From: Oculina patagonica
Lineage: Eukaryota
DNA: 64,000 bases
Direction of reading: 5' to 3'
Assembly (NCBI RefSeq): GCF_052425735.1
Contig: NC_135770.1
Span: forward strand, 22,196,001-22,260,000
Below, one piece after another: positions 1,800-63,953 of this stretch (position 1 is the stretch's first letter; each line of letters begins with the position of its first letter). The translations under genes and the position numbers were made by a program. The notes beneath the pieces are model-generated. The model was not told where the DNA came from. It saw only the letters and a list, made by a program, of their open reading frames with translations, and did no database searches.

Positions 1800-4700
1800 T
1801 CATTGCACCAGAATGTATTCCATGGCTTTGATGTGTTTTTCTCCATTATCTGGGTTATATTTTGCTGCGTTTCCACACGTGTTGTCACCATCAGGGTTTC
1901 CTCCTCCACCAAACCCGATCCTTGAGTTGCAATTGTCACAATTGTTTTGTTTGTTTGCAATAATACCGATTCTTGCTTTGGAATATGAGCTGTTATAATT
2001 AGCATTGAATCCTTCTTTGTTACAGTAGGTTTGTAAGGAGGCCTCTGAACCAATCAGCGTCTTCCACGTGTTACGACCCAGTGAGGTGGCGCGGTATTGC
2101 CCATCAGCGATCAGTGAGTACAGAGAGTTGGCCTGTTTGTTGATGACAATGAAGTTGATCTGTTGGTCGATTTTCATACCAAGACAAATCTTGGAGAAGG
2201 ATGTGTTCCAGTAGCTCGGTAACTTGGTCTCTTGTGTATCAAACCCAGTCTCCCCTCCTTGAAGATTGTATTCATTTTTATCGCTCCAGTACTCCGAGAT
2301 ATAATGAAAGGTTCTCTGAAAAAAAAAAGGAAAAATCACTTTAGTTTTTTTGCCCGGGGGGGGGGGGGGGGACTCCCATATGAAACGGACGGGGATGCTC
2401 GTCGGAAATTTTGAAAAGAACTCCTAAAAGAGACCAATCTGGGTGTGGCTCAAGCCTTTATTGACCCCTAAAAGATACCAAAAACCTAAGAATGGAGTTT
2501 ATATTTGTATATTTCTTCGTGTGTAACCCTAAACGAGACCATTATGGCTAAAAATATTGGCGTTTTGGGAGTTTTTTCCCGGAACACCCTAAGCGAGACC
2601 AAAAGTCCGAAATTTACACCCCTAAGCGAGACGACGAGCATCCCCGTCCGTTTCATATGGGAGTCCCCCCCCCCGGGTTTTTTTGGTTATGTTATTTCAG
2701 AAATCAGGATTCTGCGCCATTAGAAAGGCTGACCATTAAGCTAAAATACCTAAAACCCTTAATCATGCCCAATTATGCTCGATTCATGTTGCTTTTGCTC
2801 CATAAATTGCAATTACCGTATTCAAACTTAGCCTGGTGGACCCGGCGTTTATTTGACTCCTGTAGTTTATTGGAGCCCGATTATCATGAAGCAACGATTT
2901 TTCTTCATCAATTTCGACAAAAATGTATCTCGCTCATATAGCTACAGCTTAAATACTTGAGGGGCCTATTTTCAACTGCACCTTTGAGACCCGGCGTTTA
3001 TTCGGTACACGGCGTTTAATCGAGAAAATACGGTACATGAAAAAAGCGCATCAGGAAGAAATTTGACCTGTTCTCTTAAATGTCATACCTTGTTGCCGTC
3101 TATCTTCAAAACCGGCGTCCATCCCCCATCTCCACATCCAAAATCTCCAAAGTGACAGAAAACGGAAGTTGGTTTTGTGTCAAATTGGAGCATAACCAGC
3201 TCACTAACCCTCGACCTGTTGAATATAAAAACATATGTTACCAAGAGATAGTGTAGGAAAAAAAGAAACAAAAAAAAAAAATTAAAAAAAGTAACCAATA
3301 AAATCGACCATGGTCCATGTTTTAAAGGATATTATAAGGGTCAAACGTTTTGATCACTCCGGAGATTAGTTTTTATTGACGGCTTTCTAATCAACTGTTT
3401 CCTAACTTGCCCCAAATAATTTTCGAGTTTGATGTCAATGTTTCATAACACTGCTCAATTACCACAGCTCTAAGAAGCACGGATTTGCTCTTTTCTATTT
3501 GTTGACACCTTTTTTCAACGCTAGATGTGGAAAAAACATGTTCGTCATTTTTAAGTAACAAATTCATTAACGAAATTTTAACTAACTTTCTGATATCAAT
3601 GACCTCAACGTTTCAGTGACTTACTTGTTTTCGTCATACAGTTCCTTGCAAGACTTTGCAGCTGAAAGAACTAGAACAAAAATATGTCAGCTTCTTTAGA
3701 ACAGAGTAGTCATTGCCACCTCGCTATAAATTCGGCTATAAAATGGAGAGGAGGGAAATTGATATTCCTTGATTTATTATTAGTTCAAAATACCTTTATG
3801 GCAGTTTGTTCCACTGAATCCAGGACGACAGATACAACGAAAACCTTTACTGGTGAATCCAGCTTGACAGGTGCCATTGTTCAAACATGGGATGCTGCTA
3901 CAATGATTCTGTAATGAGAAAAAAAAGGAATAAACCACTCCACTCCACTCCAATAGGCCCCTCCCCTTTAAAGGTCTCAATAGACCTTCTAGAGGATAAT
4001 GTTTTTTAAATGTTCGTTTATAAATTTGTATTATATATTTTAGAATGCCCCTAGAAGTTTTAACCGTAGTCTACCTACACAATTTAACTTTAAAGATTAT
4101 GGTTTTACCATTTTAAAGATGTCAAGTACGGTGCAGTAAAAGTTTATCTAGTTAGTAAACTGTCAGTTTTTGGTCGGGCCTTAAGGATCTCTTTGAAGAT
4201 TAATTTTTAATGTAGCTTTGAAAAACAAAATCACCTCAGTGTCGATGTAGGTAAAGCCTGCTCGTGGTTTAAGATCTGCAGGGTGTAAAGAGTGATCCGA
4301 ATCACTCAGTTCGCATACTATTCTGTCGTTAATTGGTGGACCGATGTTGATTGACACGCAGCGACTCTCCATAACACATTGACCTCTGCAAGGATCACGT
4401 GTCTGACCCAGTTGTAGGGAAAGGTTTTTAATCACGTGACCGTGAAGAGCATAGCCATCTTTTTCAGTAGTAAATTTAACGTGTCGCCCACATGTGCCTG
4501 AATATAAAATGATAATACTATTAAAAGACAACATAAATATACGCAGTCTTATTAACGGAGGCTGTACATGTTAGATTTACACTATGAGACTTCATTTTTT
4601 TTTGGATGCATCAACTTTTATATATATTATTGTTTTATTTGTTCAATTTTTATTTTTTTTAATATTACTGTTGCTTATCTTATTAAACTGGCGCCTATTG

Positions 4701-12804: not shown

Positions 12805-14358
12805 CAAAAACGATTGTTGAAGTCCTAAAAAATTAACACTTGTAATTGTTTTGGGTAAGAACATGCACAAAAACACAAAAACGCTAATTTGTCGCAGGGA
12901 TCAGTTGCACGAATTCAAACCAGTTTGAATTTGTGATCGCACGCAGCGACAAAGACTTTCACAAAAATGCATCATGTCACACGAGGCGACTGATGTTGCA
13001 GTGAATTGTCCCCGCGATATGCTGCAGCGAATTGTCGCCTAGAGTGTCTGGGCCTTAAAAATAGTTGATCTTTGGAGCTTGCATGCGAGCGATTTCACAC
13101 TGATTTCTAAACAGTTAATAAAAGTCTGGCCAAAAATCGTAATTTCTAATATTTTTCTTTATTTTTCCAGTTTTATGAATCAGAATTGTACGATATGCCC
13201 ATTTTTACATTCCATAAGCATTCTGGCATGATTCTGCATCAATTTTCGTTAATTATTTTCTGACTTTCTAAGAAAATGGTGAAATCCAAGATGGCGGATT
13301 TAATGACGCCATGTGCCGTCATATGACGTCACAGCCAACAAAAATTTTGTCATCTTGTAGAGTAGGCTCATGGCTTTCTACACAGTGCAAAATATTTTCG
13401 CTGTACCTTAATAAAACGAAAACCCTGGGGAGGGGTTCCATCCACCTCTCCCCCCTCCCTGTACAACAGTGGGGGGTTGAGTTTGCTTGTACGTCCAAGG
13501 GTTGAATCGCACATTCACGACACGCTAAAAACTACTCAAATTCACGTGCAAACGGCAATAGCAGACGGTTACAACAACAACGACTGCAGTAGCTTTATTT
13601 GCATGAGCACAAATTCATACTGCAACAATAATAATAAAAAAAGTTTGGATGCAGGGGACCACACAACCAAGCCATAAACTGCTTGGTTTGTCTGCTGTCG
13701 GATCTTTTGTTTAAGAAATGCTCCTACCAGACGTCACTCTAAGTGTTGATAAAACCAGATTGATTGCAAGGCTGGTAGATTATAGTACTGGCCCTGAAGA
13801 AAACTAGCTCTGCTAGTTGAAATCTTGCCCTACTTCCGTTGTACCAGCCTTGTAACAGTAACGTTATAAGCAAAGAGGAAATGACAATATTAAATTAATA
13901 CCGAATTGATAATAAAATTTTGGGTTAATCTTTGTACGAAAATGTGAACTTCATTATCATTATCATTATTATAACTCTTATTGTTGTCATCATCATCAAT
14001 ATTTATTTTTTTGGTGGTTTCTTTTGAATCATTGCTTCATATTCGGTAGGTCCTGTAAATCCCGTCCCTACGAAATCACTATTCAGGATAATTGAAAAGG
14101 AAAAAAAAAAAAAAGCAAAATTATGCTTTTTCCGGTTCCTGCCATACGGAGGTTGAGCCCGCAATATGAACGGTGGGCAAAACTGGGTTTTCCTACGTCA
14201 TCGCTCCAAACATGAAGTGATACTTCACTGTCGACTAAATGAAGTATATGTCGATTGCCACTGTTTTTCTCCACTCGATGGGGCTCGAAAACCGTGTATT
14301 TTTCCGAATTTAATAAAAATAAAGCCCAACACAAACCTTTTCCTGCATCTTGGAACTA

Positions 14359-14665
14359 CAGTAGAACCCCGGTAACTCGAACTCGGATAACTCGCCACGG
14401 TTGCCTATTGATTTGAGCAACGAACAGATCACGTATTTATCAGCCTTTTTTCACTCTTATCAAAAGAATTTATGATCGTGTTAAAGTTTCTGGAGATGTA
14501 GGTTTAATTTGCACTGTACTGTATACTAAAATGCTGAAAAATCAGTAAACTATCAATTATTAACTTGGCAAATTAAATATTCAATCGACCTCGATAACTC
14601 GAAACGCCGCTAACTCGAACTGTTTTTCGTTTCCCTTCAGAGTTCGAGTTACCGGGGTTCTACTG
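14359..14665. mobile_element. Tc1/mariner (pogo/Tigger-like) MITE
   Basis: Perfect TIRs cagtagaaccccggtaactcgaactc, TA TSD. Confidence 0.85.
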
Positions 14666-16906
14666 TAGTCTCACTGATATTGAGTTTCATTTGATGAATT
14701 GTATCCCAAATGTTTAAAAACGCACAGCAAAAAAAGTCTGTTGGTAAGCGCGTCCCCGGCTGCCCGGCAGCTCAATTTTGGCGGCACTTTTTTTTGTTAT
14801 TTCTACTAAAAGATCTACAACTTTTAATATGTGCTATAATTATAACATCACCTACTGCGATTAGGAAGCCTATGTCAATATCAGTCAAAACCAGTTGAAT
14901 CCAGTTTTGAGAGGTCACTGGGGAAAACGTTGGCTGAGAAAGCTGGCCCTAATCAGATTCTCCCAAGGTAAGAGAATAAAATATAGACCTTAAACAGTGG
15001 CTGTTTTGTATCAGAACACATTGATACAAAATATTAATACCGTTTACAAAATAAAAGTTAAGGCGTACGTATATATTATCAAGGGATCAGGGCCTGTGCA
15101 CTAGCAAGCACAGCTTTTTGCTTTTCCAACTAAGATAAAATTTAGTGATCAGCAGTGTTCTATCAATCATTGCTAACAGATCTTCCAAAGGGTTTCTAAC
15201 TCTTTTAGTAGCCACTATCAACTTACAGAACTACAAATTTTGAAATCATTAAGCTTTTTTGCAACAGGATTATATCCTTTACAAGGATAATGGCAAGGCT
15301 ATTAAAGGCTATTAAAATTTGATTTAAACAAGGTGTTATCCATTTAAGATGAAAAGTATGTTGTTTTGTATTAAAGTCTTTATAACACGCCTAGAAATCT
15401 AATCCTAAAAACAGAAAAAAAAAACAAACCCTGATAGACAAAATTTAAATGATTATAGTCAACCTTTGTTCCTAGTATTTAATGAGAATGAATCTTTATA
15501 GTCCTAAACGAAATTAAAAGCTCTTGCCAAATGAAATGAGACAAAACATAGCAGTTCACAGGAAAATTATTATAATCCTTAACTGGAGAAGCCTGACTCT
15601 AGTTGAAATTAAACAATTGAAAAGTTGATTTAAAAAGTTTAATTTAGTAAATTTTACTCTAAAAGATTTATCATTTCCTAAAGTTAGGATTTCAATAATA
15701 CATATAAGTTTATATGCAGTCACAAAAACAAAACAGATTTTCTAACTCCGAAATAATTAAATACACTCAAGATATCATCTTTACAAATCAAACAAAACAA
15801 ACTTCATTTCTACACTACAGTTTCTACCTGACAAGACCAGTCTACCCGAAATGCTACATAACAACGATTTGAAAGGCACCCAAATCTAGCGAAGGCCCTA
15901 AACCTCGAAAATCCAGACTTCAAGCGCGTCCTTTTACTATTCATGACTTCAGTTAAGCTTATAGGGTTATGAACTGCAGCTACGAATTGAACAATCTCCA
16001 CAGGAACATACCAGTAGTACTCTACCCAACGCTGGTTAGAGCGGCGTACATAATAGTGATCAACCTTTTAAATGAGGTGAAGGAAAAAGGGAATGATGTT
16101 CGCTTCTTCGTTAAAATGTATTTTGGTCTGGGAGGCAGTTTAACGAGCTTCCTCGATGTCGAGTCCAATCGACCATAGCGTCGGAGTCTTCAAATGCAAC
16201 ATGAATCTCACCCAGCGATCGTCATTCCAGCAAGTCAGACACGAACAGCATCGCACACTAAATCAAAATCACTGGCTGCAGTTCGTTGAGAAAGCCTGTG
16301 AACTCAGTAAAATAAAAAAAAAAGGAACGACAAAAGAAACCAGCGCTTCGACTTCGAGCCATGTTGAACATTTTTCGCGCCTCACTTCATGTAATTTCTC
16401 TGTTTTTTCCTCGTTCAACACAACCAATCAGAGAGCGCAAAACCTAATTGTCGTAGGAAAACTCATCTTTTCCCCGCACCCGGCCTCTGATTGGCTAATT
16501 TAAATTTTGATGCCATAATCACAATTTTGTACATATACGCTCTTTTTACCTTTTTAACCGTCTTCTATTTGTAATTTTTGAACCTTTTTCATTTTAAGAG
16601 AGCGTTTTAACGAGCTACGGCTCCTAAGCTCTTCGTCTATAAATGAATTATGTCTTTATGTCTTATGTTTTTGATGGCGCGGGCCGTATGGCAGGATTGC
16701 GGGAAAAATAAAACAAGCGTTACTCTTAAAATGCGCGTAATCTAGCTGAGCTTAAAGCCTTTCAGCTTGTGGTTTGTTGTTTCAGTCACATGTGATAAAA
16801 ATTTACTAGTGTTATATTATTTTGTGCCCTAATTATATCTACCTATTTAAAAGTCACATTCGACATGGTTCCCAGGCAGTTTGTTTAAAGTTCATTGCTT
16901 CCTCTT

Positions 16907-17425
16907 TCATTCCACCAAGATATATCCCACGGCTTTGATGTGTTTGTCTCCATTATCTGGTGACATCATAGCCTCGTTTCCACACGTGTTGGAGTCATCA
17001 TGTCGCCCTCCTGTACCAAACCCGATTCTGGAATCACATCGATAGCAGTCTTTCTCATTGTTACCAAGGAAACCGATTCGCGCTTTACCCAAGGTGGTGT
17101 CACCGCTAGCTGCATTGAAACCTTCCTTGTTACAGTTGTACTGCAATGAGGCCTGGGAACCAATCAGCGTTTTCCACGTGTTGCGACCCAGTGAGGTGGC
17201 GCGGTATTGCCCATCAGCGATCAGTGAGTACAGAGAGTTGGCCTGCTTGTTGATGACAATGAAGTTGATCTGTTGGCCGATCTTCATACCAAGACAAATC
17301 TTGGAGAAGGATGTGTTCCAGTAGGTCGGCAACTTGGTCTCTTGTGTGTCAAACCCAGTTTCCCCTCCAGCGAGGTTGTAGTCATTTTTATCACTCCAGT
17401 ATCCTGAGTTGTAATGAAAAGTTCT
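16907..17425 (-). pseudogene. Orphan terminal exon of the USOMP5-like family (open frame, no upstream exons found)
   Basis: Acceptor cag|AGAACTTTTCAT, 172 open codons homologous to exon 2315-1800; no WTxVxKIDG exon seen upstream on the minus strand. Confidence 0.7.
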
Positions 17426-17689: not shown

Positions 17690-18595
17690 TGACCGTACTA
17701 TGGCCATACCGGCCATAGCCGGCCGTTCCGACTGTACCGACTGTACTGACTGTACCGTACCGACTGTGCCGGCCGTACCGACTGTACCGGCCGTACCGGC
17801 CGTACCGACTGTACCGACTGTACCGACTAGGCTTTTATAGATTGTGCTAGCATAATTTTTGGCATAATTGGAGCTAAAAAGCATAATTTGTGAAACGAGC
17901 ACTGCCACGGCATAATTAGCAATTTTTAGCACTTTTTGGTGCATAAATTCATAAAATGTAGTAAATATGGTGTACTTTCTACAGAAATAAATGAAATTTA
18001 GGTAGTTTGTTCTTGCAATGCGTGTTTTAGCTATACAATTGTGATTGTTAAGTCGTTGGAGGCATTTTACAAACGGTTTAGAGATGCGAGCAGCTAATTT
18101 GGACAGCTGACGGCCGTGATAAACTGCCATAAACACAAATAAATGTACAACAACAGTTTATTTAAAAAACATCATAATTTGGTGTCGTTATTGCGCATCT
18201 CTATGTATAGAATCTACGTCATTTTGTGAGCATAATTTCGGAAATCAGAAGCATAATTTGGGAATTCTGGCATAATTTTTGCATAATTTGGCAAAATTTT
18301 GAGCACTGCTAGTAGCATAATATGCCACTTTTAGGAGCACAATCTATAAAAGCCTAGTACCGACTGTACCGACTGTACCGACTGTACCGACTGTACCGGC
18401 CGTACCGACTGTACCTACTGTACCGGCCGTATCGAAAGTACCGGCCGTACCGGGTGTACCGAGCGTACCGAGTGTACCGGCCGTACCGGCTGTACCGAGT
18501 GTACCGAGTGTACCGAGTGTACCGAGTGTACCGAGTGTACCGAGTGTACCGAGTGTACCGAGTGTACCGAGTGTACCGAGTGTACCGGCTGTGTA
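17690..18595. repeat. 9-bp minisatellite (tgtaccgac/tgtaccgag/cgtaccggc)n, interrupted by a MITE
   Basis: Direct reading; explains the RYT/HSV/GTV low-complexity ORFs. Confidence 0.9.
17828..18356. mobile_element. hAT-type MITE
   Basis: TIRs taggcttttatagattgtgct / agcacaatctataaaagccta; 8-bp TSD gtaccgac; internal gcataat repeats. Confidence 0.8.
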
Positions 18596-18907: not shown

Positions 18908-19756
<849 letters not shown>

Positions 19757-20684: not shown

Positions 20685-21541
<857 letters not shown>

Positions 21542-24500
21542 ATGGCGGGCCAAGTGGAAGAAGAACCCGATTTGCCTGAAGAAGTCACTGAGTCGCTAGA
21601 GACGTTTCATGAAGCGTTGGGAAAAGTTGAAGATGTATTTAAACCACTTCTGGAGACACCAGTGGACGATTTGAAGGAAAAGGTTTGGAGATTATATCGA
21701 TTTGGTTCCAGCTAACTCGCATGCCGATAATTTGTTGAGCAGTGGGACATTCCATTTTTTATCCGCACCCCCCCTAAGGATGGCGGGTTTTTGCTAAGGG
21801 GGGTTCGGATTTTTTCTTCAAAGAAGCCGACAAAATTTGGACCGTTCGGAAATTTTTTTCAAAGGTGCCGACAAACAATCAACCCTTCGGATTTCATTTT
21901 TCAAAGGGCACCGACAAAAAATTGAGGGTTCGGATTCCTGTCATCCTTAGGGGGGGTGCGGATAAAAAATGGAACGTCCCGCTGCAAAATTATGTTCTCT
22001 TTTAAGTCACGTGTATGCCATAATTAGTCGGTTTAACCTAAAAAGCTTTTGAATTTACTGCATGGAAACAGCAACTTGAATTTGTCAGAATGGCTTACGT
22101 TGGCACATTGGTATTGATAAAATAAACTAAGTAGTAAATTGTCAAAAAATTCTCATGCATGTTGCTTATAAATTGACCTAGTACATGTTAATTTTGATTA
22201 GACGGGCTTTATGTATAAATTTAAAATTATGTTAACAACTTTTTTTGTAGTAAATAATAAAGATGGTAAATTTTAAGCTCGGTAATAAATAATAAAGATA
22301 AGATGTTCTACATGACACGAGCATGGGACAAAGAAAAATTCTGAGTCCCCGACGGGAATCGAACCCATGGCCTCCCAGATACCGGTTGGGCACTCAAACC
22401 AAGTGAGCTACGAGAGACTCGTTGTGAGCTGGGCTATTTTACTAGGTTGATATGTGACACGCGTCCTGCATACTGCTAGGATCAGCAATGTCGAATTCAT
22501 CAAGTTTTGTAGTAAATAATAAAGATGGTAAATTTTAAGCTCGGTAATAAATAATAAAGATAAGATGTTCTACATGACACGAGCATGGGACAAAGAAAAA
22601 TTCTGAGTCCCCGACAGGAATCGAACCCATGGCCTCCCAGATACCGGTTGGGCGCTCAAACCAACTGAGCTACGAGAGACTCGTTGTGAGCTGGGCCATT
22701 TTACTAGGTTGATATGTGACACGCGTCCTGCATACTGCTAGGATACTATTATTACCAAGCTTAAAATTTACCATCTTTATTATGCAGGACGCGTGTCACA
22801 TATCAACCTAGTAAAATGGCCCAGCTCACAACGAGTCTCTCGTAGCTCAGTTGGTTTGAGCGCTCAACCGGTATCTGGGAGGCCATGGGTTCGATTCCCA
22901 TCGGGGACTCAGAATTTTTCTTTGTCCCATGCTCGTGTCATGTAGAACATCTTATCTTTATGTTTACAACTGTTCAACCTGAATCTTAACTCTTTATCTG
23001 AGGAAAATAATCCTTGGATTTATATTTTGATAAGACATAAAAGCTATCAAAATCCAATAATAATTATTTGCGCAGAGTTACGGAGATGCAAATTTAGTGA
23101 AAATCCTAGACAGTTACTGTAATTTTCACTCCCTCCACCAGTCAAATGGGTACCAGAAGCTGTGTTTGAGTTTAAAATGAACAGTAATGATTCCATATTG
23201 TTAACCTTGTAATGACTACACGTACATTTTGGATGCATGAAACTACTTTATTTCTTACACAGTAAAGCATGATTTTTATCTCTTTTAGATCAATCCACTA
23301 CAGAGTGCGAAACTTGATTTAGTTGTTGCTTATGCCATCAACTCAATGTTCTGGAGTAAGTGAACCAAAACCTACATGTTTAAATATATATAAAACTGTT
23401 ACCCTAAACTTCAAGATATATCCAGTGGCCTGCAAAAGTTTTTATTTTATTTTTTGACACAACAACATGACAAAATTACTTTATTGGGATGTGTTCCTCT
23501 TACTCTTCTTCCATTTTGATAAACACCGTTGTGCTTTGCTCGAGGTTGCAGCTAGAGCGCATCCTGTGTACATCCCTTGTCACAGATAATTGCATACCAG
23601 GGTTTTCAAACTTTAAGATCTGATCCTACTGTGCACCCTAATTTATTTTTGTGGAGGCCTTTATTCAATTTTTTTGAGCCTGCAAAGTAGTAACAATGTG
23701 TTGCAAAAAATTATGAAATCAAAAGTTCATACAAAAGTCGTGTGAATCATGCCTTAATTATGCTATCAAACTGTCAAATAATTTCTCAAGTCAACCAGTT
23801 CAAGGAGAGGGAGAGGAGAGGGAAGGCCCCTTTTAAGGCCGGGAAGAGTAGGATCTAATGTGGGGACTACTTCAAGGAAAACATGAGCCACAGTTACATT
23901 GCACAAGATGTTAGTGCGATTCTATTAAACTGTCAATTACATGTAATTTCTCAAGTTCAAGGAGAGGAAAGGCCCCATTTAGGGAAGAGTGGGACTTAAT
24001 GCAGGGAATACGGCAAGGAAAACATCAGCCACAGTTACATTGTACATATAATTGATTACAGTGGAACCCCGATATAATGATCTTCGATATAACGATATTC
24101 CCGATATAACGATGAATATGTTATGTCCCGGCAATAGTAAAATGTATGGGACGGAACCCCGATATATAACGATTCCTTGATATAACGATATAATTTTACT
24201 GCCCCCGTGGCATATCGTTATTTTGGGGTTCCACTGTAGTTTGATTTCAAAATTACCATGATGCACACATGTATAATATATAGTGTATTACCTTATACTT
24301 TGTTCCACAAAATGTTTCAATAAAATGTTCACAAACATGTTATTTTTTGATTTAAAGTTTACTATTAATTCATGCAATTTACCACTCAATTCTTTGGTCT
24401 ATTGTTTCAAAAAAACACTTGGAATGTATGTTGGAAGAACACTTGGAAAACCTATAAATCACAAGCTGAACTTTCTTAGTACAGTAATGATTCGATTTAG

Positions 24501-35796: not shown

Positions 35797-35958
35797 NNNN
35801 NNNNNNNNNNNNNNNNNNNNNNNNNNNNNNNNNNNNNNNNNNNNNNNNNNNNNNNNNNNNNNNNNNNNNNNNNNNNNNNNNNNNNNNNNNNNNNNNNNNN
35901 NNNNNNNNNNNNNNNNNNNNNNNNNNNNNNNNNNNNNNNNNNNNNNNNNNNNNNNNNN
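35797..35958. other. Assembly gap (N run)
   Basis: Run of n. Confidence 1.
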
Positions 35959-38893: not shown

Positions 38894-39127
38894 GTAAATA
38901 ATAAAGATGGTAAATTTCAAGCTCGGTGATAAATAGTGAAGAAATTATTCAACATGACACGAGCGTGGGACAAAGAAAAAATCTGAGTCCCCGACGGGAA
39001 TCGAACCCATGGCCTCCCAGATACCGGTTGGGCGCTCTAACCAACTGAGCTACGAGAGACTTGTTGTGAGCTGGGCCATTTACTAGGTTGATATGTGACA
39101 CGCGACCTGCATACTGCTAGGATCAGC
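38894..39127 (-). mobile_element. tRNA-derived SINE-like copy with TSD
   Basis: Same unit as 22246-22962; flanked by ata(g/a)gcttaagata; absent from the paralogous block at ~60540. Confidence 0.8.
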
Positions 39128-39559
39128 ATAAGCTTAAGATATTTTTGTTATTATATCTTTTGATTTTAAAAAAGCAATAATATACCAATATAGGCAGAGA
39201 TGGTTTTTGCAATAAATTTAAGGTGGATAAAACAAGAAACGTGACAAAATTTAGCCGTGTTTTTCCAAGATTCTCCCTCCTTCGACAAAGCTCCTTTAAA
39301 ATCCCATGGGAATAATTTTATCACCAGCCGAAGAATTGTTATGAGAATAGTGAGTGCCAGTCTTCAGGCGAAGTGGCCACGCTTTATTGACACTGGCGAC
39401 AGTTTAAGTGGTAAACGTATTCTGGAAAACGTAGAGTGCAGTATTTGCCTTTTATTGAATCTCTTTATACGTTAACACGTCTATCTGCAACTCATGCAGA
39501 TCATCTGAAAGACAATATTCCTTTGCATTAACAATTTTTTGTTTATATTTTAAAACCAC

Positions 39560-40427
39560 TTTTCCCGCAGAAAGTTTGGTTGTCAATTTTGTCACTTTAA
39601 AATAACACACTAAGAGAGGATAATGAACAAGGTATATAATGCTGAGACGTGTATCTATATCTAACCATTACATCGCGTGAAGATATATTATTCCACTCAA
39701 GTATTAAGCGATTGATCAATTGATTTATTGATGAATTGATTTAGTGGCAAATTCAGCTTTACCGAAGTGTTTGCTTTGTTAATACACTACAAATAAATAC
39801 CAAATAAACAAGAAGAGAAAATCACGACTCGTTAAAATTATTGTTATAATAAACGTTTCCCGCAGAAAGTTTGATAATCAATTTTGTCACTTTAAAATAA
39901 CACACTGAGAGAGACCAATAAGGAAGATATATACTGCTGAGACGTGTATCTATATCTAACCATAACATCGCGTGAAGATATATTTTTCTACTCAAGGATT
40001 AATCGATTTATTTATTGACGGATTGACTTAGTGGCAAATTCAGCTTTGCCGGAGTGTTAGCTTTGTTAATGCACTACAAATAAAATACCAAATAAACAAG
40101 AAGATAAAATCACGACTCGTTAAAATTATTGTTATAATAAACTTTTCCCGCAGAAAGTTTGATAGTCAATTTTGTCACTTTAAAATAACACACTGAGAGA
40201 GGCCAATAAGGAAGATATATAAAGCTGAGACGTGTATCTATATCTAACCATAACATGGCGTGAAGATATATTATTCCACTCAAGGATTAATCAATTGATT
40301 TATTGATGGATTGACTTAGTGGCAAATTCAGCTCTGCCGGAGTGTTTGCTTTGTTAATGGACTACAAATAAATACCAAATAAACAAAAAGATAAAATCAC
40401 GACTCGTTAAAGTTTTTCTTATAATGT
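39560..40427 (+). repeat. Three tandem ~290-bp copies immediately upstream of the start codon
   Basis: tttcccgcagaaagtttg recurs at ~39561, 39857 and 40144; single homologous unit at ~60938-61270. Confidence 0.85.
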
Positions 40428-40472
40428 TAAGTCTCCAATAGCGGGTACTTCGTAAAGACATTACTCAACAAG

Positions 40473-43400
40473 ATGCGCTCATCTCTGAACGTTCGGTTCA
40501 TTCTGCAGCTATCCTGTGTGATCGCGATCGTAACTGCTGATGGCAACGACACCGCACCCGTGTCGACTCCGGCTCCTTCCAAAAAGAGCGAAAAAGCAAT
40601 TATCGTGAACGCGAATGGAAATTCAGGCAGCATTGAGATCGCCAATGTGAAAGATTCACACAACACCGAGAAAGCCATCAAATCTCTTGAAGCAACTTTG
40701 GAGAAAAACTTTGAAAAGCTTATTCGCGTAGTCAATGGCACATCTCGTGGAAAACCCAACGTTGAATCTGGTATAAAATTGTTTCGCTTGTTTGACTTCT
40801 TTTGTTTGTTTCTTGCTAAACTTTATTGCATTCTATCGATCGTGGACAGTTTGTTCTTTGCGTCGTGTAACGAATCGACGTGTATTGCGTCGTGTAAAAG
40901 CCTATAGAATTGTGCCTCTTGTTTGATTTAATCTCTCTGCTTTGTTTCTCGCTTATAACTTTATGGAATTTAATTTTGGGCACGCTCGTACATTGTGCCA
41001 TGTGATGAAGCATCGTATCTTGCATCGTGGAAAAATGTGTTTCTTGTTTTATTTAGTTTCTTTGTCTTGTTTCTAACTTACTTTATTGCATTTTATCTTT
41101 TGCAGGTTCGTCCTTCGCATCGTGTAAAGACATTTACGCGAACCATAAGTAAGTTGTTAGGTTGCAATATATAAGTATCAAAGGCACCCAATGAGTAAAA
41201 AAGGAAAAAAGAAAAGAACTTAAAAATGATCAACGAAATAACCGTCTATCTTTTGTGCTTTTTTAGTAAGTTGTGACAAAAAATCTAGATTTCATATTTA
41301 TGAACAATCCTTACCTTTGACCACCGCAGTTTTTTCGTTGTCATATTTTTAAAACATCTTTTTAATCACTAAATTTCGATAAATTTCTTGTAGAAAAAGA
41401 CCTTTTGAGAAAGCTCTAAATATAAATTTTCCTTATTTTTTCTTGCACGAGTAACCATCGAAAGGTCTTGGAGAAAGTATTATGCAGATGTGGTTTACTT
41501 TTCATTTATTTCTTCTTATTTTTTTGTAATCAGGTCGCAGGGGAATAAAGCTTACTTACTCCAAATAAACTCTCGGAAGGTCCCTGTTTTTTGTCACATG
41601 ACAATTCATGGCCTTGGAGCATGCGGTGGTGGTGGATGGACGCTGGTCATGAAAATTGACGGCGCTAAGGTAAAACGTGACACTCGAGCTCACTAATCTA
41701 AAATAATGTAATCTAAAACATTGTCAAACATTATGACGTATTCTTGTGGCGTTATGTTTAAGTGACAATATTCGGAGTATCGGCGTTGTGTTTTTCTTTG
41801 AAGGCAGAAGGATTCGATTGAAACTTGTAGTTCCCTTACAAAGAATCAACAAAACCAGCGCTTGTTACCTTGACTATAACTTAAGAAGCGTAAAGTCTTC
41901 CTAAACAATTTTTGTGACAAAATGTTATCCAAGGTAAAATAACGTTCTACGGTTTTTAAGGTCGCGCAGGACCATTGCTCATTAATAAATTCATTAGCCA
42001 AATTTCTTGCCGAGGTGCTATCTTGTAATGCTTTAATTCGCTATATTTTGAACATCGATTCCTCTAAAATTTATCAAGGATATTAGGGGATGATGGAATG
42101 ACATTATGATTGTTCTAATACTGAGAGATCACCGTTGACTGTGATGTTACCAGTCCTTAAATGTTTAACTGCAGATAATACGGTTTTGTGTCCAAGTTTT
42201 CAGCTAGCACAGCGCACCAAATTTAATGATTATACAACCTAGTGATAGATCATAACCTCTTTTGTGCTATGACTAGAACGAAATTTTCGATTTCAAAAAC
42301 TGCTACAAGTTAATGGCTTCCAAGAGAGTAAAAATTTGAAATTTAAACTTTGAAACATGCTATTTTCATTTTGAGAAAGAAATTTAAAAATTCGCTCTAG
42401 TCATAGCACAATAGAGTACACCAAGTTTACGTTCCGAATCAACTCTTGAAATTCTATGTCGGCGGAGAAAACTTGGACACAAAACTGCAGATTTCGAGGC
42501 TTCCGAAGATCTTCCGAGTCAATGTTTACAACAACGTGTGATATATTCAAAGCTGTGAATCTAATTATTCTAATTTGCCATGTTCCAGCGCACGGGGCAC
42601 AAAGCTGAGAACAATTGCTGCTAATTAATTGTACAAAGAACTTTAAAAACAAACAATCTTATGAATATTTCGTTTGTTGTCGGCTTCAGTCGTCGCAGTT
42701 CGTGTATACTCTTTAAATAAATACATACTAATGATTGCAAGGGTCCTGCGCGACCTTAAAGGTGCTGTGTAGTTTCTATGAAATCATCTCAAGATCTCAA
42801 ACAATTAAAGAAAATCCTTTTATTGGGATGGTGTAACTCTCCGTTTGTATTACATATCGCGATTTTTGTTTTTATTCTCGTTAGGCAACTTTTCGTTACG
42901 ATTCCCAACTCTGGAGCAACAAGATCGACTTTAATCTTCCAGGAGGAATGACTGGTTTTGACCACCATGAAGCCAAGTTACCGACCTACTGGAACACACC
43001 TTTTTCAAAGATTTGTCTTGGTATGAAGATCGGCCATCAAATCAACTTCGTTACCATCGACAAGCAGGCCAACTCTTTGTACTCACTGATTGCTGACGGG
43101 CAATACCGCGCCACCTCACTGGGTCGTAGTACGTGGAAGACGCTGATTGGTTCACAGGCCTCCTTACAGAGCCACTGTGACATGGAAGGATTCAATGCAG
43201 GGGTTCATGGTGGCTATTCTAAAGCAAGGATCGGTATCATTAGTAACAACGAAAATGACTGCAAAACAACTAATTCCAGAATCGGCTTTGGTACAGGAGG
43301 GCACCCTGATGGCTCCAATACGTGTGGGAACGCGGCCGCCGGCAGTCCTGATAATGGAGACAAAAGCATCAAAGTCTTGGGATACATCTTGGTCCAGTGA
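40473..43400 (+). CDS. Secreted fibrinogen/intelectin-like (USOMP5-like) protein, 4 exons, ~330 aa
   Basis: Exons 40473-40770 (signal peptide + linker), 41106-41148 (SCKDIY), 41534-41669 ([19 protein letters not shown]), 42885-43400; intact frame. Confidence 0.9.
41960..42755. mobile_element. Kolobok-like MITE (TTAA TSD)
   Basis: ggtcgcgcaggacc / ggtcctgcgcgacc TIRs, TTAA on both sides; empty site in the paralogous intron at ~32455. Confidence 0.85.
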
Positions 43401-44575: not shown

Positions 44576-44796
44576 TACCAGGGACAACTTTTCTCAATAT
44601 AACTGAACTGAGAGCAACTTTTCTTTTTTGATGTGAGATCAAAGTAGGTCCCTTGCATACAGTCAAACGATTTTGTGTTGAACGTCTCTCTAGTTTGCAG
44701 GGTTGTGGAAACAAATTTGAGCTACATACTGGCCTTTTATAATTCTTTTATAATAAGTGTTTTCAAATACAATTGACCTGTTACGTTTTTCCCAGT

Positions 44797-45125
44797 TCTC
44801 TGCCACATGACGAGTCATGGCCTTGGAGCTTGCGGTGGTGGTGGATAGACGCTGGTCATGAAAATCGATGGTGCTAAGGTGAAAAATGACATATTGTTTA
44901 TCGTATCAAGAGCAATATAAAATGATTAAAAAAATGCATTACTAAATCAGATTGACTTCAGGCTAAGTACTTGAATTTTATGTCGCGCTTTTTAATTTTT
45001 ATTTCAGTTAGACAACCTTTCGTTACGGTTCCCAACTCTGGAGCAAAGTAGAAGGAAAGTTTGGGTTTGACAATCACGAAACAAGTTGCCGAGCTACTGG
45101 AACACATCCTTCTCCAAGATTTGCA
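44797..45125 (+). pseudogene. Fragmentary USOMP5-like paralog (exon 3 and exon 4 pieces)
   Basis: [26 protein letters not shown] (TGG>TAG), then a deleted/frameshifted [23 protein letters not shown]. Confidence 0.8.
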
Positions 45126-46223
45126 TGCATGCAAAAAACTTGACTGTTCTCGACCAAGGATCTTCTCAAAAAAATTACAAACCCATCTCTCCTCAACCTT
45201 CGCGCCATATTTATCACTCAGTTTTTATTATGCTTATCGCTCCGCTATCCGGAAAGGAAATACTATTTCCTTTTGAAACAGCTGCTTGTTCAGTGTATTT
45301 CATGACCGGGTCTTATTTACGGGAAAGCGAAATCATGTTCAGAGAATGAGAAATTTAAAGTGGTTTCTAGTGACGTAAAAATAGGCCAAGTTTGATATTT
45401 TAAGAGGCTTGGGCTATATAACAAAAGAAATGATTTATTCATCACTCGAAATTGACTGCTGTATTTCCCTAGGAAGCCAAGTCAGAATTAATTGTAATAT
45501 ATCGAAATTGGCCCAGAAATTTTGCCTTAACTCTAATAGGAATGGTAACCCGCGACAATTGTTAATTTTGCCTTACCCTTTCAATAAGTTGACAATTATT
45601 CCCGGCCCGAGTTTACTGGGTTGGTTTCTGTACTTTAAAGTATTACATATAAAATTCACAACGACTGAGGTTAATACATTCCCTTTTGTCGAGACAAATC
45701 TAAACGTAAACTCAAAATGATACATTTCAATGAAATAGAAACCTAGAATATTGCTCGAAATGAGACACAGAAATAATACATTGAGATTTCACTCAATAAT
45801 TTATAATGACTATGGAATAGTGGAGCTATCCGTTAATTTATGCCCTTCATACAAATAACATGAACATTAAGACATTGCTATAGCTAAATAAATTGAATGA
45901 ATGAATAAATGAACGAATGAGCTAGTGAAGATTTTATTCAGATAGACCGTATATAAATAAAAATTCTCCTTAGCTTTCTTCTTGCCATATCCTGATTTCT
46001 AAATAAAACACCGTTGTTGTGATAAAAATTGGAGAAACCATACAAATGTCAAGTGAACCATGCTAATGCAGAGCTCAATTACAACATCATCGAGTAACAA
46101 ACGAATTCAAGGAATAAGCAGCAACTGACACAGCAGACGTTCAGAATTCGGATCAATATTCTTTTCTGGGAAACAACGACGATAAAATGTGATCGAGTAC
46201 CAATACATAAGTAGTGCACGAAT

Positions 46224-49351: not shown

Positions 49352-52300
49352 CAGTGGCAGTAATTCCCAAGTATCGGGTCAAAAACCCCTCGTCTCTAAA
49401 GTAGCATTAGTTCCCAAGTCCCGGTCTTAAAAAGCCTCGTCCCTGGAGTAGCATTACTGGCAGTAATTCCCAAGTATCGGGTCTTAAAAAGCCTCATCCC
49501 TGGAGTAGCATTACTGGCACTAATTCCCAAGTACCGGGTCAAAAAAGCCTCGTCCCTGGAGTAGCATTAGTTCCCAATTATCGGGGCTTAAAAAGACTCA
49601 TCCCTAGAGTAGCATTAATGGCAGTAATTCCCAAGTATCGGGCTTAAAAAGCCTCCTCCCTGGAGTAGCATTACTGGCAGTAATTCCCAAGTATCGGGCT
49701 TAAAAAGCCTCGTCCCTGGAGTAGCATTACTGGCAGTAATTCCCAAGTATTGGGCTTAAGAAGCCTCGTCCCTGGAGTAGCATTAGTGGTAGTAATTCCC
49801 AAGTATCTGGCTTAAAAAGCCTCCTCCCTGGAGTAGCATTAGTTCCCAATTATCGGGGCTTAAAAAGACTCATCCCTAGAGTAGCATTAATGGTAGTAAT
49901 TCCCAAGTATCGGGCTTAAAAAGCCTCGTCCCTGGAGTAGCATTACTGGCAGTAATTCCCAAGTATCGGGCTTAAAAAGCCTCGTCCCTGGAGTAGCATT
50001 ACTGGCAGTAATTTCCAAGTATTGGGCTTAAGAAGCGTCGTCCCTGGAGTAGCATTAGTGGTAGTAATTCCCAAGTATCGGGCTTAAAAAGCCTCGTCCC
50101 TGGAGTAGCATTACTGCAGTAATTTCCAAGTATCGGGCTTAAGAAGCCTCGTCCCTGGAGTAGCATTAGTGGTAGTAATTCCCAAGTATCGGGCTTAAGA
50201 AGCCTCGTCCCTGGAGTAGCATTACTGGCAGTAATTTCCAAGTATCGGGCTTAAAAAGCCTCGTCCCTGGAGTAGCATTAGTGGTAGTAATTCCCAAGTA
50301 TCGGGCTTAAGAAGCCTCGTCCCTGGAGTAGCATTAGTGGTAGTAATTTCCAAGTATCGGGCTTAAGAAGCCTCGTCCCTGGAGTAGCATTAGTGGTAGT
50401 AATTTCCAAGTATCGGGCTTAAGAAGCCTCTTCCCTGGAGTAGCATTACTGGCAGTAATTTCCAAGTATCGGGCTTAAGAAGCCTCGCCCCTGGAGTAGC
50501 ATTACTGGCAGTAATTCCCAAGTATCGGGCTTAAAAAGCCTCGTCCCTGGAGTAGCATTAAAAGGCAGTAATTCCCAAGTATCGGGCTTAAAAAGCCGCG
50601 TCCCTGGAGTAGCATTACTGGCAGTAATTCCCAAGTATCGGGCTTAAAAAGCCTCGTCCCTGGAGTAGCATTAGTGGTAGTAATTCCCAAGTATCGGGCT
50701 AAAAAAGCCTCATCCCTGGAGTAGCATTAGTGGTAGTAACTCCCAAGTATCGGGCTTAAAAAGCCTCGTCCCTGGAGTAGCATTAGTGGTAGTAACTCCC
50801 AAGTATCGGGCTTAAAAAACCTCGTCCCTGGAGTAGCATTAGTGGTAGTAATTCCCAAGTATCGGGCTAAAAAAGCCTCATCCCTGGAGTAGCATTAGTG
50901 GTAGTAACTCCCAAGTATTGGGCTTAAAAAGCCTCATCCCTGGAGTAGCATTAGTGGTAGTAATTCCCAAGTATCGGGCTTAAAAAACCTCGTCCCTGGA
51001 GTAGCACTAAAAGGCATTAATTCCCAAGTATCGGGTCTTAAAAAGCCTCATCCCTGGAGTAGCATTAGTGGTAGTAACTCCCAAGTATCGGGCTTAAAAA
51101 ACCTCGTCCCTGGAGTAGCATTAGTGGTAGTAATTCCCAAGTATCGGGCTAAAAAAGCCTCATCCCTGGAGTAGCATTAGTGGTAGTAACTCCCAAGTAT
51201 TGGGCTTAAAAAGCCTCATCCCTGGAGTAGCATTAGTGGTAGTAATTCCCAAGTATCGGGCTTAAAAAACCTCGTCCCTGGAGTAGCACTAAAAGGCATT
51301 AATTCCCAAGTATCGGGTCTTAAAAAGCCTCATCCCTGGAGTAGCATTAGTGGTAGTAATTCCCAAGTATTGTGCTTAAAAAGCCTCGTCCCTGGAGTAG
51401 CATTACTGGCAGTAATTCCCAAGTATTGTGCTTAAAAAGCCTCGTCCCTGGAGTAGCATTACTGGCAGTAATTCCCAAGTATCGGGCTTAAAAAGCCTCG
51501 TCCCTGGAGTAGCATTAGAGGCAGTAATTCCCAAGTATAGGGTCAAAAAAGCCTCATCCCCGGAGTAGCATTAGTGGCAGTAATTCCCAAGTATCGGGTC
51601 AAAAAAGCCTCATCCCTGGGGTAGCATTATTTCCCAAGTACAGGGTCAAAAAAGCCTCATCCCTGGAGTAGCATTAGTGGCAGTAATTCCCAAGTATCGG
51701 GTCAAAAAAGCCTCATCCCTGGGGTAGCATTAGTTCCCAAGTATCGGGTCAAAAAAGCCTTGTCCCTGGAGTAGCATTAGTGGCAGTAATTCCCAAGTAT
51801 CGGGTCAAAAAAAGCCTCATCCCTGGAGTAGCATTAGTTCCCAAGTATCGGGTCAAAAAAGCCTCGTCCCTGGAGTAGCATTACTGGCAGTAATTTCCAA
51901 GTATCGGGCTTAAAAGCCTCGTCCCTGGAGTAGCATTAGTGGTAGTAACTCCCAAGTATCGGGCTTAAAAAGCCTCGTCCCTGGAGTAGCATTAGTGGTA
52001 GTAATTCCCAAGTATCGGGCTTAAAAAGCCTCGTCCCTGGAGTAGCATTAGTGGTAGTAATTCCCAAGTATTGGGCTTAAAAAGCCTCGTCCCTGGAGTA
52101 GCATTAGTGGTAGTAATTCCCAAGTATCGGGCTTAAAAAGCCTCGTCCCTGGAGTAGCATTAGTGGTAGTAATTTCCAAGTATCGGGCTTAAGAAGCCAC
52201 GTCCCTGGAGTAGCATTAAAAGGCAGTAATTTCCAAGTATCGGGCTTAAAAAGCCTCGTCCCTGGAGAAGCATTAAAAGGCAGTAATTCCCAAGTATCGG

Positions 52301-52625
52301 GCTTAAAAAGCCTCGTCCCTGGAGTAGCATTAGTGGTAGTAATTCACAAGTATCGGGCTTAAAAAGCCTCGTCCCTGGAGTAGCATTAGAGACAGTAATT
52401 CCCAAGTATCGGGCTTAAAAAGCCGCGTCCCTGGAGTAGCATTACTGGCAGTAATTCCCAAGTATTGGGTCAAAAAAGCCTCATCCTTGGAGTAGCATTG
52501 TTTCCTAAGTATAGGGTCAAAAAAGCCTCATCCCTGGAGTAGCATTACTGGGACTAATTCCCAAGTATCGGTTCAAAAAAGCCTCATCCCTGGAGTTGCA
52601 TTTAGTTCCCAAGTATTGGGGCTTA
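49352..52625. repeat. 56-bp tandem satellite, ~3.3 kb, roughly 60 units
   Basis: Unit gtaattcccaagtatcgggcttaaaaagcctcgtccctggagtagcatta(ctggca/gtggta); shorter ~47-bp variants near the ends. Confidence 0.97.
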
Positions 52626-59800: not shown

Positions 59801-59957
59801 GTTTTAAAGCAATACACTTACTTCTTCTAGGTGTTGAATCAACCTGGGCAGGCGTGCTGGCCAAAGGGGCAAGAACTGATACTGCAGTAAATGATGTTGA
59901 ATTGGTGGTCTGGGCAGACGTGGCAGCAGAGAGAACATTGGCTGGCTGAGTAGAAGA

Positions 59958-60090
59958 AATCGAGTCGATCAAAAGAAACCGAGTCGATAAAAAGAAATCG
60001 AGTCGATCAAAAGTAATCGAGTCGATAAAAAGAAATCGAGTCGATCAAAAGTATTCGAGCTGGATGTAAAAGAAATCGAGCTGGATGAAA
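59958..60090 (-). repeat. Right subterminal repeats of the large transposon
   Basis: atcgagtcgat(c/a)aaaag repeats. Confidence 0.85.
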
Positions 60091-61315: not shown

Positions 61316-63953
61316 ATGCGCTCGTCTCTTCGGTTTATTCTGTGGCTATCCTGTGTGATCGCGATCGTAACTGCTGATGGTAACAACACTGCACCCGTGT
61401 CGACTCCGCTTCCCGCCAAAAAGGGCGACAACACAATTATCGTCAACGTGAATCAAAATACAGGCAACACTGAGAAGGCCATCAAATCCCTTGAAGCAAC
61501 CTTACAGAAAAAATTTCATCAACTTATACAGGCAGTAGTGAACGCCACATCTCGTGAGAATCATAATGTCGAATCTGGTAAGATGGCTTTATCGATGATT
61601 ATATACTAATTGGTTTATTCAGTTCATTTCCCTGTTTTGTTTACCCTTAACTTTACTACATTATATCTTTTGCAGGTTCGTCTTTTGCGTCATGCAAAGA
61701 AATTTACGTGAATCAGAAGTAAGTAGCCATGATAAAAGTGGTACGGGGAAAAAAGAGTTCTCTGCTAGCATTGTCTCCTAGCTCTGTTAGCAATTAAAGG
61801 AGACGTGTTGTGTAAGAAAAGTTTATGCAATTTGGTTCTTTAGGATTTTCATTTGAAGAGCAAATCTTGCTCTTCACCAGTTATCTCGTTATACAACATC
61901 ACCGTTTCAGCGTAATAGTCGAAAAACAGCATTTACCATCAGTCGCAGTAATAGTATACCACGCAAAGTTTTTAAGTAATGCGGATTCGGATTTGAGCAA
62001 AAATAGTGGCGGATTTACCGATTTGGCCAAAAAATAACACGGATCGTCGGATTTGCGTACCTCTATTAACCCCCCCCCCCCCCCCCCTCTATCTCTCTCT
62101 CGTTGACCGCATGTAAACTATTCTTTCCGGTTAGATAATCAAACAACCGAGAAAAAAATAGTGTTTTATAAATGTAAATCGAAACAGAACACGTAGCCTT
62201 GGCTTTGTTGCATTTTCCATTTGTTTTCGATAAATTTCAGTTAAGCGTTTAAAGACTGAGAAAGTTAAATTTATATATTCGATGAAGTTACAATACCCCA
62301 GATAAATGATCTCATCAAGTCTTCAGTTTTGAGTGCGGAGTTAAAGTTAAGTCTACACTCAATCAGTTTTTCTGTCCTTTAAGTGACCCTGAGTAGAAAA
62401 CGTTCAGCTTGTTTCCGTAAAATTTACCCCGTTTTGCAGAAATTTGTCTTCTATGTATTACCATTTTTAAAGGAGGGGAAGACAAGGCATATCGGAGTGG
62501 GGGAGTATTTTTTTTTTTCTACGCATTAACATGTTTTGTTTTGTAATAAGGTCTCAAGGAAACAAAGCTTACCTACTACAAATGGACTCTGGGAAGGTCC
62601 CTGTTTTCTGTCTCATGACGAGTCTTGGAGCATGCGGTGGTGGTGGATGGACGCTGGTCATGAAAATCGATGGTGCTAAAGTAAGGCCCGGTTCAGATGC
62701 CGTACTATTCATGAGCCGAACTCAATTCGAATTTGGACCGACCCAAATTGACAAAAGTACACCTCTTGATTCAGATGCCGTACTTTTTGGCCGTTCCGAG
62801 ACCGTTCCTAATACAGTTCCATACAGTTCCGTTAAAACCAGTCTTTGAGATAAACTGCTTGCAAAATACATTATAATAGTTTATGAATTAGGATCGGCAC
62901 TTGAAAAGTACGGCGTCTGAATCAAAGCCGTTCCAAAGGCGTTCCACAGGCGAAATTCTCGGCCAAGCCAGGCGGGAGGATCGGGTGAGCCGTTCCAAAT
63001 TGAAATAGCCGTTATAATTTGATTCAGACGGCGATCTTTTCATGTACTTAATTCAAGGAATTAGGTTCGGCTCATGAAAAGATCGGCGTCTGAACCGGGC
63101 CTAAATAAAATATAGAGAGCCCAATATAGAATTATGAAACAGTTGTTTTTACCCCGAGTGTACATTTGAAATTAATTGTAAATTGATCTCTGCAAAAAGA
63201 AGAAACAAAATTAGTATGTGTCTCCTCGCAATATCCAATATAGTCGACCCGAAGAATCGCGTTAGTGAATTGACTCATTTCCCGCTGTCAAGCTAGGAAA
63301 TTAATCAAGCAGCTCCACGTATTCTTGTTTTAGATGACGTACTGTATAACGTACTGTATGTAACGGTTATGTAGTACGTGTGCAGGACTTGATTTTCATG
63401 TCACACTTTTTATCTTTATTCCCAATAGACAACATTTCGTTACGATTCAAATCTCTGGAGCAACAAGGTCGACTTCAATCTTCCAGGAGGAAAGACTGGC
63501 TTTGACCATCACGAGACCAAGTTACCGACCTACTGGAACACACCCTTCTCCAAGATCTGTCTTGGCATGAAGATCGGCCAACAGATCAACTTCATTGTCA
63601 TCAACAAGCATGCCAACTCTCTGTACTCACTGATCGCTGACGGGCAATACCGCGCCATCTCACTGGGTCGTAACAAGTGGAAGACGCTGATTGGTTCACA
63701 GGCATCCTTGCAGACCAACTGTAACAAGGAAGGGTTCAATGCAATTAGTGGTAATAGTGCTGATTCTAAAGCAAGAATCGGTTTTCTAGGCAACCAACAA
63801 AATGACTGCGGCAGCTCTGAGTCCAGAATCGGGTTTGGTACGGGAGGGCATCCTGATGACTCCAACACGTGTGGAAACGCAGCAAGTTCCGGGCACTCGC
63901 CAGATAATGGAGGGAAGAACATCAAAGCCATGGGATACATTTTGGTTCAGTGA
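61316..63953 (+). CDS. Secreted fibrinogen/intelectin-like (USOMP5-like) protein, 4 exons, ~319 aa
   Basis: Exons 61316-61577, 61676-61718, 62551-62680, 63429-63953; intact frame and signal peptide. Confidence 0.9.
62685..63101. mobile_element. PIF/Harbinger MITE inserted in a splice donor
   Basis: TIRs ggcccggttcaga / tctgaaccgggcc; TAA TSD (62682-62684, 63102-63104). Confidence 0.88.

Follow-up and report, generated by a model that had tools for sequence, protein, structure and literature searches.

Does a cluster of coral genes, whose products share one framework and differ in a few short loops, encode a repertoire of binding proteins? This question is raised by a stretch of 64,000 nucleotides from Oculina patagonica (NCBI RefSeq assembly GCF_052425735.1, contig NC_135770.1, positions 22,196,001 to 22,260,000), hereafter called the window, with positions counted from its first letter. 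The cluster consists of tandem USOMP-5/egg-protein-like genes of a stony coral, which are annotated as 'skeletal organic matrix protein 5-like'. An earlier note made from the sequence alone had proposed that they form a secreted family with hypervariable loops and possibly a diversified, lectin-like recognition repertoire. The explanation examined here, to which we give an even chance, is that the encoded domain is an intelectin-like binding module whose loop-tip residues would set specificity, so that the paralogues would constitute a germline-encoded binding repertoire.

Six-frame motif searches of the window found the motif EGFN five times and the exon with GGGGWT or GDGGWT four times. Extension between stops gave five full terminal exons of 171-174 codons, all of them open and lying where the earlier note had placed them; the fifteen loop strings that it quoted were exact, letter for letter. 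Among the five copies, pairwise amino-acid identity was 42% in the three loops it had named (V1-V3), compared to 82% in the remaining sequence. Four or more different residues occurred in 8 of 29 columns of the loops but in only 3 of 145 columns outside them (Fisher p = 3e-5). The contrast between framework and loops is therefore well founded, but 'almost invariant' was a generous description, given that 99 of the 145 columns in the framework show no variation.

In a set of 79 unique terminal exons, of which five are those of the window, 73 were taken from contigs of coral-associated metagenomes or transcriptomes and one came from ENA, entropy reached its maxima in V1-V3, at residue 210 and at the isolated residues 77, 83-84, 96 and 165. 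The original list of loops had missed a fourth one, GG-x-PDD (residues 208-215), as well as the hot positions 77, 96 and 165. V2 is mostly a conserved motif, with hypervariability restricted to one or two positions, namely residue 197, where 17 different amino acids were found in the 79 sequences, and to a lesser extent 198-199. Within this motif N191, C196 and S201 hardly vary, if at all, between corals and bacteria, residues 193-195 and 200 are acidic or amide, and the motif as such is kept from corals to myxobacterial homologues. In the AlphaFold2 model the variable stretches fall on the DSSP loops 176-182, 191-200, 209-216 and 222-229, which are flanked by strands at 169-175, 183-190, 201-208, 217-221 and 230-233. 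As modelled, variation is thus placed in the C-terminal third, in four loops that follow one another between strands, and the earlier assignment of the variable segments to loops in the C-terminal part agrees with this.

Pfam gave nothing significant for the five terminal exons or for full-length coral relatives, and phmmer with one terminal exon found no match among the PDB sequences. In distant multidomain relatives, approx. 55-70 residues just upstream of the terminal-exon homology matched positions 2-70 of Fibrinogen_C/COLFI. An alignment of 39 diverse family domains, which served as profile for the PDB search and as input for AlphaFold2, contains the invariant residues C16, C44 and G58-W59-T60, i.e. 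the Cys pair and the GGGWT motif of the A subdomain are present. Searched against the PDB, the family profile matched intelectins first, with E-values between 2.6e-9 and 4e-7 (lamprey LSVL 2.6e-9, XEEL 6e-8, human ITLN-1 3e-7). Fibrinogen, angiopoietins, tenascins and ficolins came next. All these matches were confined to the first ~55-58 positions, and the alignment with the intelectins covers residues 4-58. A profile of the C-terminal 84 residues matched no PDB chain at E <= 10, and the coral proteins did not match the whole PF00147 model, in which the B and P subdomains are included.

AlphaFold2 predicted the domain of gene C (target P0004) with a mean predicted local distance difference test score (pLDDT) of 93.1 and a predicted template modelling score (pTM) of 0.91. 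When this model was compared with the PDB by Foldseek, ranks 1 to 6 were all taken by intelectins, namely XEEL, human intelectin-1 and LSVL, with E = 8e-6 to 1e-4 and a probability of 1.00. With alignments of ~300 columns, these matches had template modelling (TM) scores of 0.51-0.58 when normalised to the query. Canonical fibrinogen-like domains aligned either in the N-terminal part, over ~130 columns with TM 0.32-0.37, or poorly over the full length with TM ~0.4 and a root mean square deviation (rmsd) of ~10 Å. On the basis of the model, the domain can be considered as a divergent member of the fibrinogen-related superfamily with a shape closest to the intelectins; it is not an intelectin by sequence. 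The fibrinogen/intelectin fold that had been suspected from the opening motif is thereby upheld and sharpened to 'intelectin-like'.

Rates of change were estimated in several ways. By the Nei-Gojobori method (NG86), the five copies had a non-synonymous divergence (dN) of 0.51 in the loops and 0.095 in the framework, with a synonymous divergence (dS) of 0.43 in the framework; loop dS was saturated and unusable for pairs containing gene A. On the tree of the 79 sequences, iqtree (GY+F3X4) gave a dN/dS ratio (omega) of 0.63 for V1-V3 and 0.19 for the rest. Per-site marginal likelihoods were calculated by a script on the fixed tree and matched the iqtree log-likelihood of -15754.79. With the synonymous rate fixed gene-wide, the omega of the site classes was 0.8 in the loops and 0.15 in the framework. 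In the one-rate site test, omega was above 1 at 13 sites (p < 0.05). Ten of these sites belong to V1-V3, and residues 178, 180, 181, 197, 210, 222, 223 and 224 passed Bonferroni correction with omega 2-3.5.

A non-circular test was based on the 11 sites with at least four states in the window copies, which were tested on the other 74 sequences only. With the synonymous rate (alpha) fixed at 1, the non-synonymous rate (beta) at these sites amounted to 1.7-fold the synonymous rate of the gene as a whole, with a likelihood ratio of 89. The same sites showed dN/dS 1.46 when 26 disjoint pairs of close sequences were compared, and 217 of 263 changes were non-synonymous compared to an expected share of 77.8% (binomial p = 0.036), while the framework had an omega of 0.21-0.25. 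The seven closest pairs differed at these sites by 14 non-synonymous changes and one synonymous change. Taken together, omega at the hypervariable sites was about 1.7-3.5 with gene-wide dS and about 1.0-1.5 with local dS (p 0.036-0.23). Change at the hot sites is therefore no slower than at silent sites and probably a little faster, and diversifying selection is no more than plausible.

Gene models were obtained by alignment of the paralogous upstream regions and reading of the splice sites (Table 1). Complete genes consist of four exons with GT-AG introns and encode a signal peptide, a linker of ~70 residues and a globular domain of ~228 residues. SCK is encoded by exon 2, which is small, and in genes C, D and E exon 3 encodes VFC.M...GGGGWT.V, while gene A has the divergent GDGGWT in place of GGGGWT. 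As read from the sequence, the N-termini of D and E start with a basic residue, after which comes a hydrophobic segment that closes with ...VTA/DG. This looks like a typical signal peptide, and the secretion claimed for the family is plausible for these two genes. The linker following the signal peptide contains a 20-residue heptad-like stretch that may form a helix.

Table 1. Features of the gene cluster in the window, with loop positions given for gene C
Feature	Position	Strand	Remarks
Gene A, terminal exon	1800-2315	-	171 codons plus stop, intact; AG acceptor
Gene A, exon with divergent 16-residue motif (GDGGWT exon)	3089-3217	-	hidden Markov model (HMM) E = 5e-10
Gene A, small exon (SCK exon) with 10-residue stretch	3624-3662	-	
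Gene A, EGF-domain exon	3795-3908	-	Pfam PF00008, 33 bits, above cut-off
Gene A, PAN/apple-like exon, weak match	4235-4498	-	Pfam PF00024, E = 0.009, below cut-off; splice context
Copy B, orphan terminal exon	16907-17425	-	frame intact
Gene C	31187-33106	+	exons 31187-31424, 31508-31550, 32038-32173, 32588-33106
Loop V1, AVSTISAHS	32900-32926	+	P0004 residues 174-182; 178, 180 and 181 hypervariable
Loop V2, 11 residues	32951-32983	+	residues 191-201; N-x-E-N-D-C-x-S-x-D-S motif conserved
Fourth variable loop, GGNPDDSN	33002-33025	+	residues 208-215; 210 hypervariable
Loop V3, EACCLSD	33038-33058	+	residues 220-226; 222-224 hypervariable; indels
Assembly gap, run of N	35797-35958		intergenic
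Gene D	40473-43400	+	intact, 330 codons; exons 40473-40770, 41106-41148, 41534-41669, 42885-43400
Decayed partial copy	44792-45136	+	exon-3-like, then first ~48 terminal-exon codons with deletions
Gene E	61316-63953	+	intact, 319 codons; exons 61316-61577, 61676-61718, 62551-62680, 63429-63953

Five terminal exons and one fragment are clustered in the window, pseudogenes included, and D and E are intact in all their exons. Gene C has an in-frame TAG at 31388-31390 (codon 68), where D has GAA and E has CAT. It lies in exon 1 and separates the signal peptide from the remainder of the gene, which is otherwise intact and seems to be under constraint still. In the NCBI model, P0004 (O. patagonica ACROYT_G041159), the protein begins with the first Met behind the TAG and therefore has no leader; its sequence agrees with gene C at 100% identity. 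In the decayed partial copy a stop is located within the GGGGWT motif (read as GGGG-stop-T).

Copy B is an orphan: neither tblastn nor the family HMM, applied to all stop-to-stop pieces, detected an exon 2 or an exon 3 for it within the window. Directly upstream of exon B are two intronless open reading frames (ORFs) for Arf-family GTPases (18908-19756 and 20685-21269, both on the minus strand; Pfam Arf E = 1e-59 and 1e-65), and 9-bp microsatellites lie between exon B and the nearer of them (17719-17828 and 18357-18587). The Arf ORFs may be retrogenes, or an insertion that parted exon B from its upstream exons.

Gene A is a fusion with the order PAN/apple-like, EGF, SCK, GDGGWT and terminal exon; its first exon with a signal peptide was not identified. 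The EGF exon, exon 3 and terminal exon also occur in another coral (locus L001, an ENA contig of 233 kb), the EGF exon with 87% identity to its counterpart there. L001 also contains a terminal-exon pseudogene with a stop and frameshifts (14220-14721), 4 kb 3' of the intact A-type gene, and the birth-and-death pattern is therefore found outside the Oculina genome as well. Within the window, the nonsense codon in C, orphan exon B, the decayed fragment and the domain-shuffled gene A support birth-and-death evolution of the cluster, as the earlier note had proposed.

Several further elements were observed around these genes. In gene D, the small SCK exon and its flanks recur as two additional, degenerate copies within intron 1 (40800-41100), and a 288-bp unit repeated three times with 90% match (39558-40425) ends 48 bp 5' of the ATG of this gene. 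The assembly gap begins 2.7 kb after the stop of gene C and ends 4.5 kb before the ATG of gene D. It was considered as a possible break in a family gene and rejected as such, as no family exon touches it. An ORF of 478 codons on the minus strand (34360-35796) runs into the gap; it has no Pfam match and is transposon-like, resembling the C-terminal part of a retroelement protein. On the far side of the gap there are many stops in all three minus-strand frames, and continuity of the ORF across the gap can therefore not be claimed. A 3-kb satellite at 49560-52602, with ~55 copies of a 56-bp unit at 89% match, causes a local rise of the G+C content to 0.46. Four tRNA-like Rfam matches (31-41 bits) were found at 22348-22905 and 38990-39056, three of them in or beside a 262-bp tandem duplication. 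They are probably copies of a tRNA-derived short interspersed element (SINE) and not tRNA genes.

With the terminal exon of gene E as query, 4,262 protein clusters at 90% identity were found at E <= 0.001. The best matching clusters came from O. patagonica and bore the name 'putative skeletal organic matrix protein 5', and similarity to proteins with the USOMP-5 name amounted to E = 1e-79 to 1e-107 with 72-95% identity over 99-100% of the terminal exon. Among the 120 best matches there were at least 16 distinct O. patagonica family proteins, all of them on one 38.3-Mb contig. A search without length restriction gave 1,495 representatives at 50% identity, some of which are multidomain proteins of up to 1,900 residues. 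USOMP-5 of Acropora millepora (B8VIU6) is a skeleton-occluded protein for which no domain was reported (Ramos-Silva et al. 2013, PMC3748352). Its relatives in Acropora digitifera were called 'EP-like' due to a region in common with coral egg proteins and the Nematostella protein 248548 (Takeuchi et al. 2016, PMC4890752). The latter shares a cluster with P0122, one of the family matches, and the UniRef name of the Nematostella member is 'Fibrinogen C-terminal domain-containing protein'. An egg protein of Euphyllia carries the annotation USOMP-5, and its expression is raised in the ovaries (PMC7579821); in sponge homologues only fibrinogen-related subdomains were noted (Conci et al. 2019, PMC6824150). 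The family is thus known by name, while its full fold and intelectin likeness, the hypervariability of the loops, the dynamics of tandem clusters and the myxobacterial relatives were not found in the searchable literature; the same applies to binding of microbes or symbionts and to induction by challenge.

Relatives of the whole coral domain (residues ~15-241) with 33-47% identity also occur in bacteria. They were found in 196 genome stretches. Almost all of these are from Myxococcota, and two complete genomes, of Minicystis rosea (CP016211) and Nannocystis punicea (NZ_CP114040), are among them. There the family domain is located C-terminally in ORFs of 460-835 residues (e.g. L101, 3001-3642), in L132 (3001-3687) together with DUF4215 repeats, and Pfam detects only Fibrinogen_C positions 5-57 of it. 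This hints at an old, or horizontally moved, branch of fibrinogen-related domains that has no Pfam model.

How far do these results carry the idea of a binding repertoire? Several of them weigh against it. The C-terminal 170 residues are without sequence match to any Pfam model or PDB chain, and the TM scores to the intelectins are barely above 0.5 with an rmsd of 6-7 Å. The omega of whole loops lies between 0.6 and 0.8, i.e. below 1, and the earlier note had itself named a loop dN/dS of 1 or less among the results that would refute its proposal. What is left of diversifying selection concerns the hypervariable positions only, which exceed 1 strongly under uniform dS, with eight sites passing Bonferroni correction, and only nominally under local dS. 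When the synonymous rate was free at each site, only five loop sites remained at p = 0.02-0.06 and none of them survived correction. For the 11 sites of the non-circular test, a local alpha of 1.3-1.7 and a beta of 1.7 gave a ratio of 1.0-1.3 (p = 0.23). Silent divergence is ~1.5-fold higher in the loops and the C-terminal third. Finally, the only experimental contexts of the family in the literature are those of a skeleton-occluded and a yolk protein, not immunity (PMC3748352, PMC4890752, PMC7579821).

The main rival has an appreciable probability, though one short of even. According to it, these are bulk structural or storage proteins of skeletal matrix and yolk with a constrained core, the loop tips drift neutrally and the differences between copies are a by-product of duplication. 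It fits the known members, which are the skeleton-occluded USOMP-5 and major egg proteins (PMC3748352, PMC4890752, PMC7579821), an omega at hypervariable sites that is indistinguishable from 1 under local dS, and the in-frame indels within the loops; loop differences are also seen when gene A is compared with its likely orthologue at L001. However, the non-synonymous rate at the hot sites was 1.7- to 2.5-fold the gene-wide silent rate in every comparison, and pure neutrality does not predict such an excess unless mutation is locally raised. The 14 to 1 ratio in the seven closest pairs also argues against drift. The high confidence of the model in the loops and the invariant motif beside the variable tips look built rather than floppy. 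Members of the family are also egg proteins up-regulated in coral ovaries (PMC7579821, PMC4890752), and together with the fast change at the loop tips this would suit a role in gamete or self/non-self recognition, where the loops mediate species- or genotype-specific recognition of proteins instead of glycan binding. We regard this as very improbable: the egg proteins were described as yolk proteins from ovarian somatic cells (PMC7579821), and the nearest fold is that of a lectin.

The raised silent divergence has to be considered separately. Silent differences at codons that keep their amino acid were 21.7% in the loops and 14.0% elsewhere (p = 0.005), and silent divergence along the terminal exon rises from 10% at the N-terminal end to ~17-24% in the C-terminal third (residues 174-241). 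Mosaic histories or alignment errors could therefore inflate the rates in this region. Between genes C and D, identity is 86% in the part that starts with exon 3, includes intron 3 and ends at the stop, and 68% upstream of it. Given this break and the gradient of the silent rate, mosaic histories are likely, and the raised silent divergence between close paralogues in the C-terminal third of the terminal exon would also fit gene conversion. That such a process accounts for the whole pattern, with conversion homogenising the framework while the loops or the C-terminal third escape or swap, is nevertheless improbable. Residue 197 lies in an unambiguously aligned motif of fixed length and still shows 17 amino acids, and the effect at silent sites is modest (~1.5-fold). 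Moreover, gene conversion is a process and not a function, and it would be compatible with selection or neutrality alike.

If the intelectin-like binding module is the correct explanation, the domain would bind a ligand, most likely a carbohydrate, with the assistance of Ca2+. A conserved scaffold of acidic and amide residues (the V2 motif, N219 and D226-N-G) would hold the putative site, which may bind Ca2+ as fibrinogen-related lectins do. In its sequence, N-x-E-N-D-C is reminiscent of the calcium loop D-x-D-N-D...C known from fibrinogen-related domains. The paralogues keep the core and the acidic/amide motif (N-x-E-N-D-C-x-S-x-D-S, D-N-G) and replace residues at the tips of the four loops, where about a dozen positions may vary specificity from copy to copy. 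The proteins would be secreted, possibly as oligomers formed through the N-terminal helix, and the set is renewed by duplication, by decay as in C, B and the fragment, and by exon shuffling as in A. A wider claim can be formulated on this basis, namely that corals possess a large germline set of secreted intelectin-fold lectins that recognise microbes or symbionts, with loop tips diversified by positive selection and birth-and-death evolution, as a cnidarian counterpart of the snail FREPs (fibrinogen-related proteins). In this breadth, the claim appears unlikely.

Thousands of cnidarian and sponge proteins are labelled 'skeletal organic matrix protein 5-like' without any domain or function. 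Placing them near the intelectins provides a concrete hypothesis, i.e. Ca2+-dependent ligand binding with a specificity determined by named residues. Should the loop tips tune recognition, the family would be a candidate for coral-microbe or coral-symbiont specificity, and its appearances in transcriptomes of calcification, ocean acidification and reproduction would need to be re-read. Should the loops be merely unconstrained, this would be an ordinary expanded gene family, and the value of the assignment would lie in better annotation.

Among known systems, the direct sequence family of the window genes consists of USOMP-5 and coral egg proteins, namely those from Euphyllia ancora and Galaxea fascicularis. 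Intelectins, or X-type lectins (human ITLN-1 4WMQ, Xenopus XEEL 4WMO, lamprey LSVL 7E1E), came first in the PDB both by profile, where the match is limited to the N-terminal subdomain, and by structure over the full length, and they are secreted, as the coral proteins are predicted to be. They differ from the coral domain in that sequence similarity ends after ~55 residues, identity is 14-17% and the coral domain is ~40-50 residues shorter. Intelectins are defined by their Ca2+/diol ligand site, at which exocyclic diols of microbial glycans are bound. With the canonical fibrinogen-related domains (PF00147) of ficolins, tachylectin-5, angiopoietins and tenascins, the coral domain has the A subdomain with its Cys pair and GGGWT in common, whereas Foldseek alignments extend over only ~130 columns with TM 0.32-0.42. 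For snail FREPs somatic diversification has been described, of which there is no evidence in the coral family. Like the coral genes, canonical fibrinogen-related domains and snail FREPs form multigene families, of the lectin type, and it is their C-terminal part that binds the ligand.

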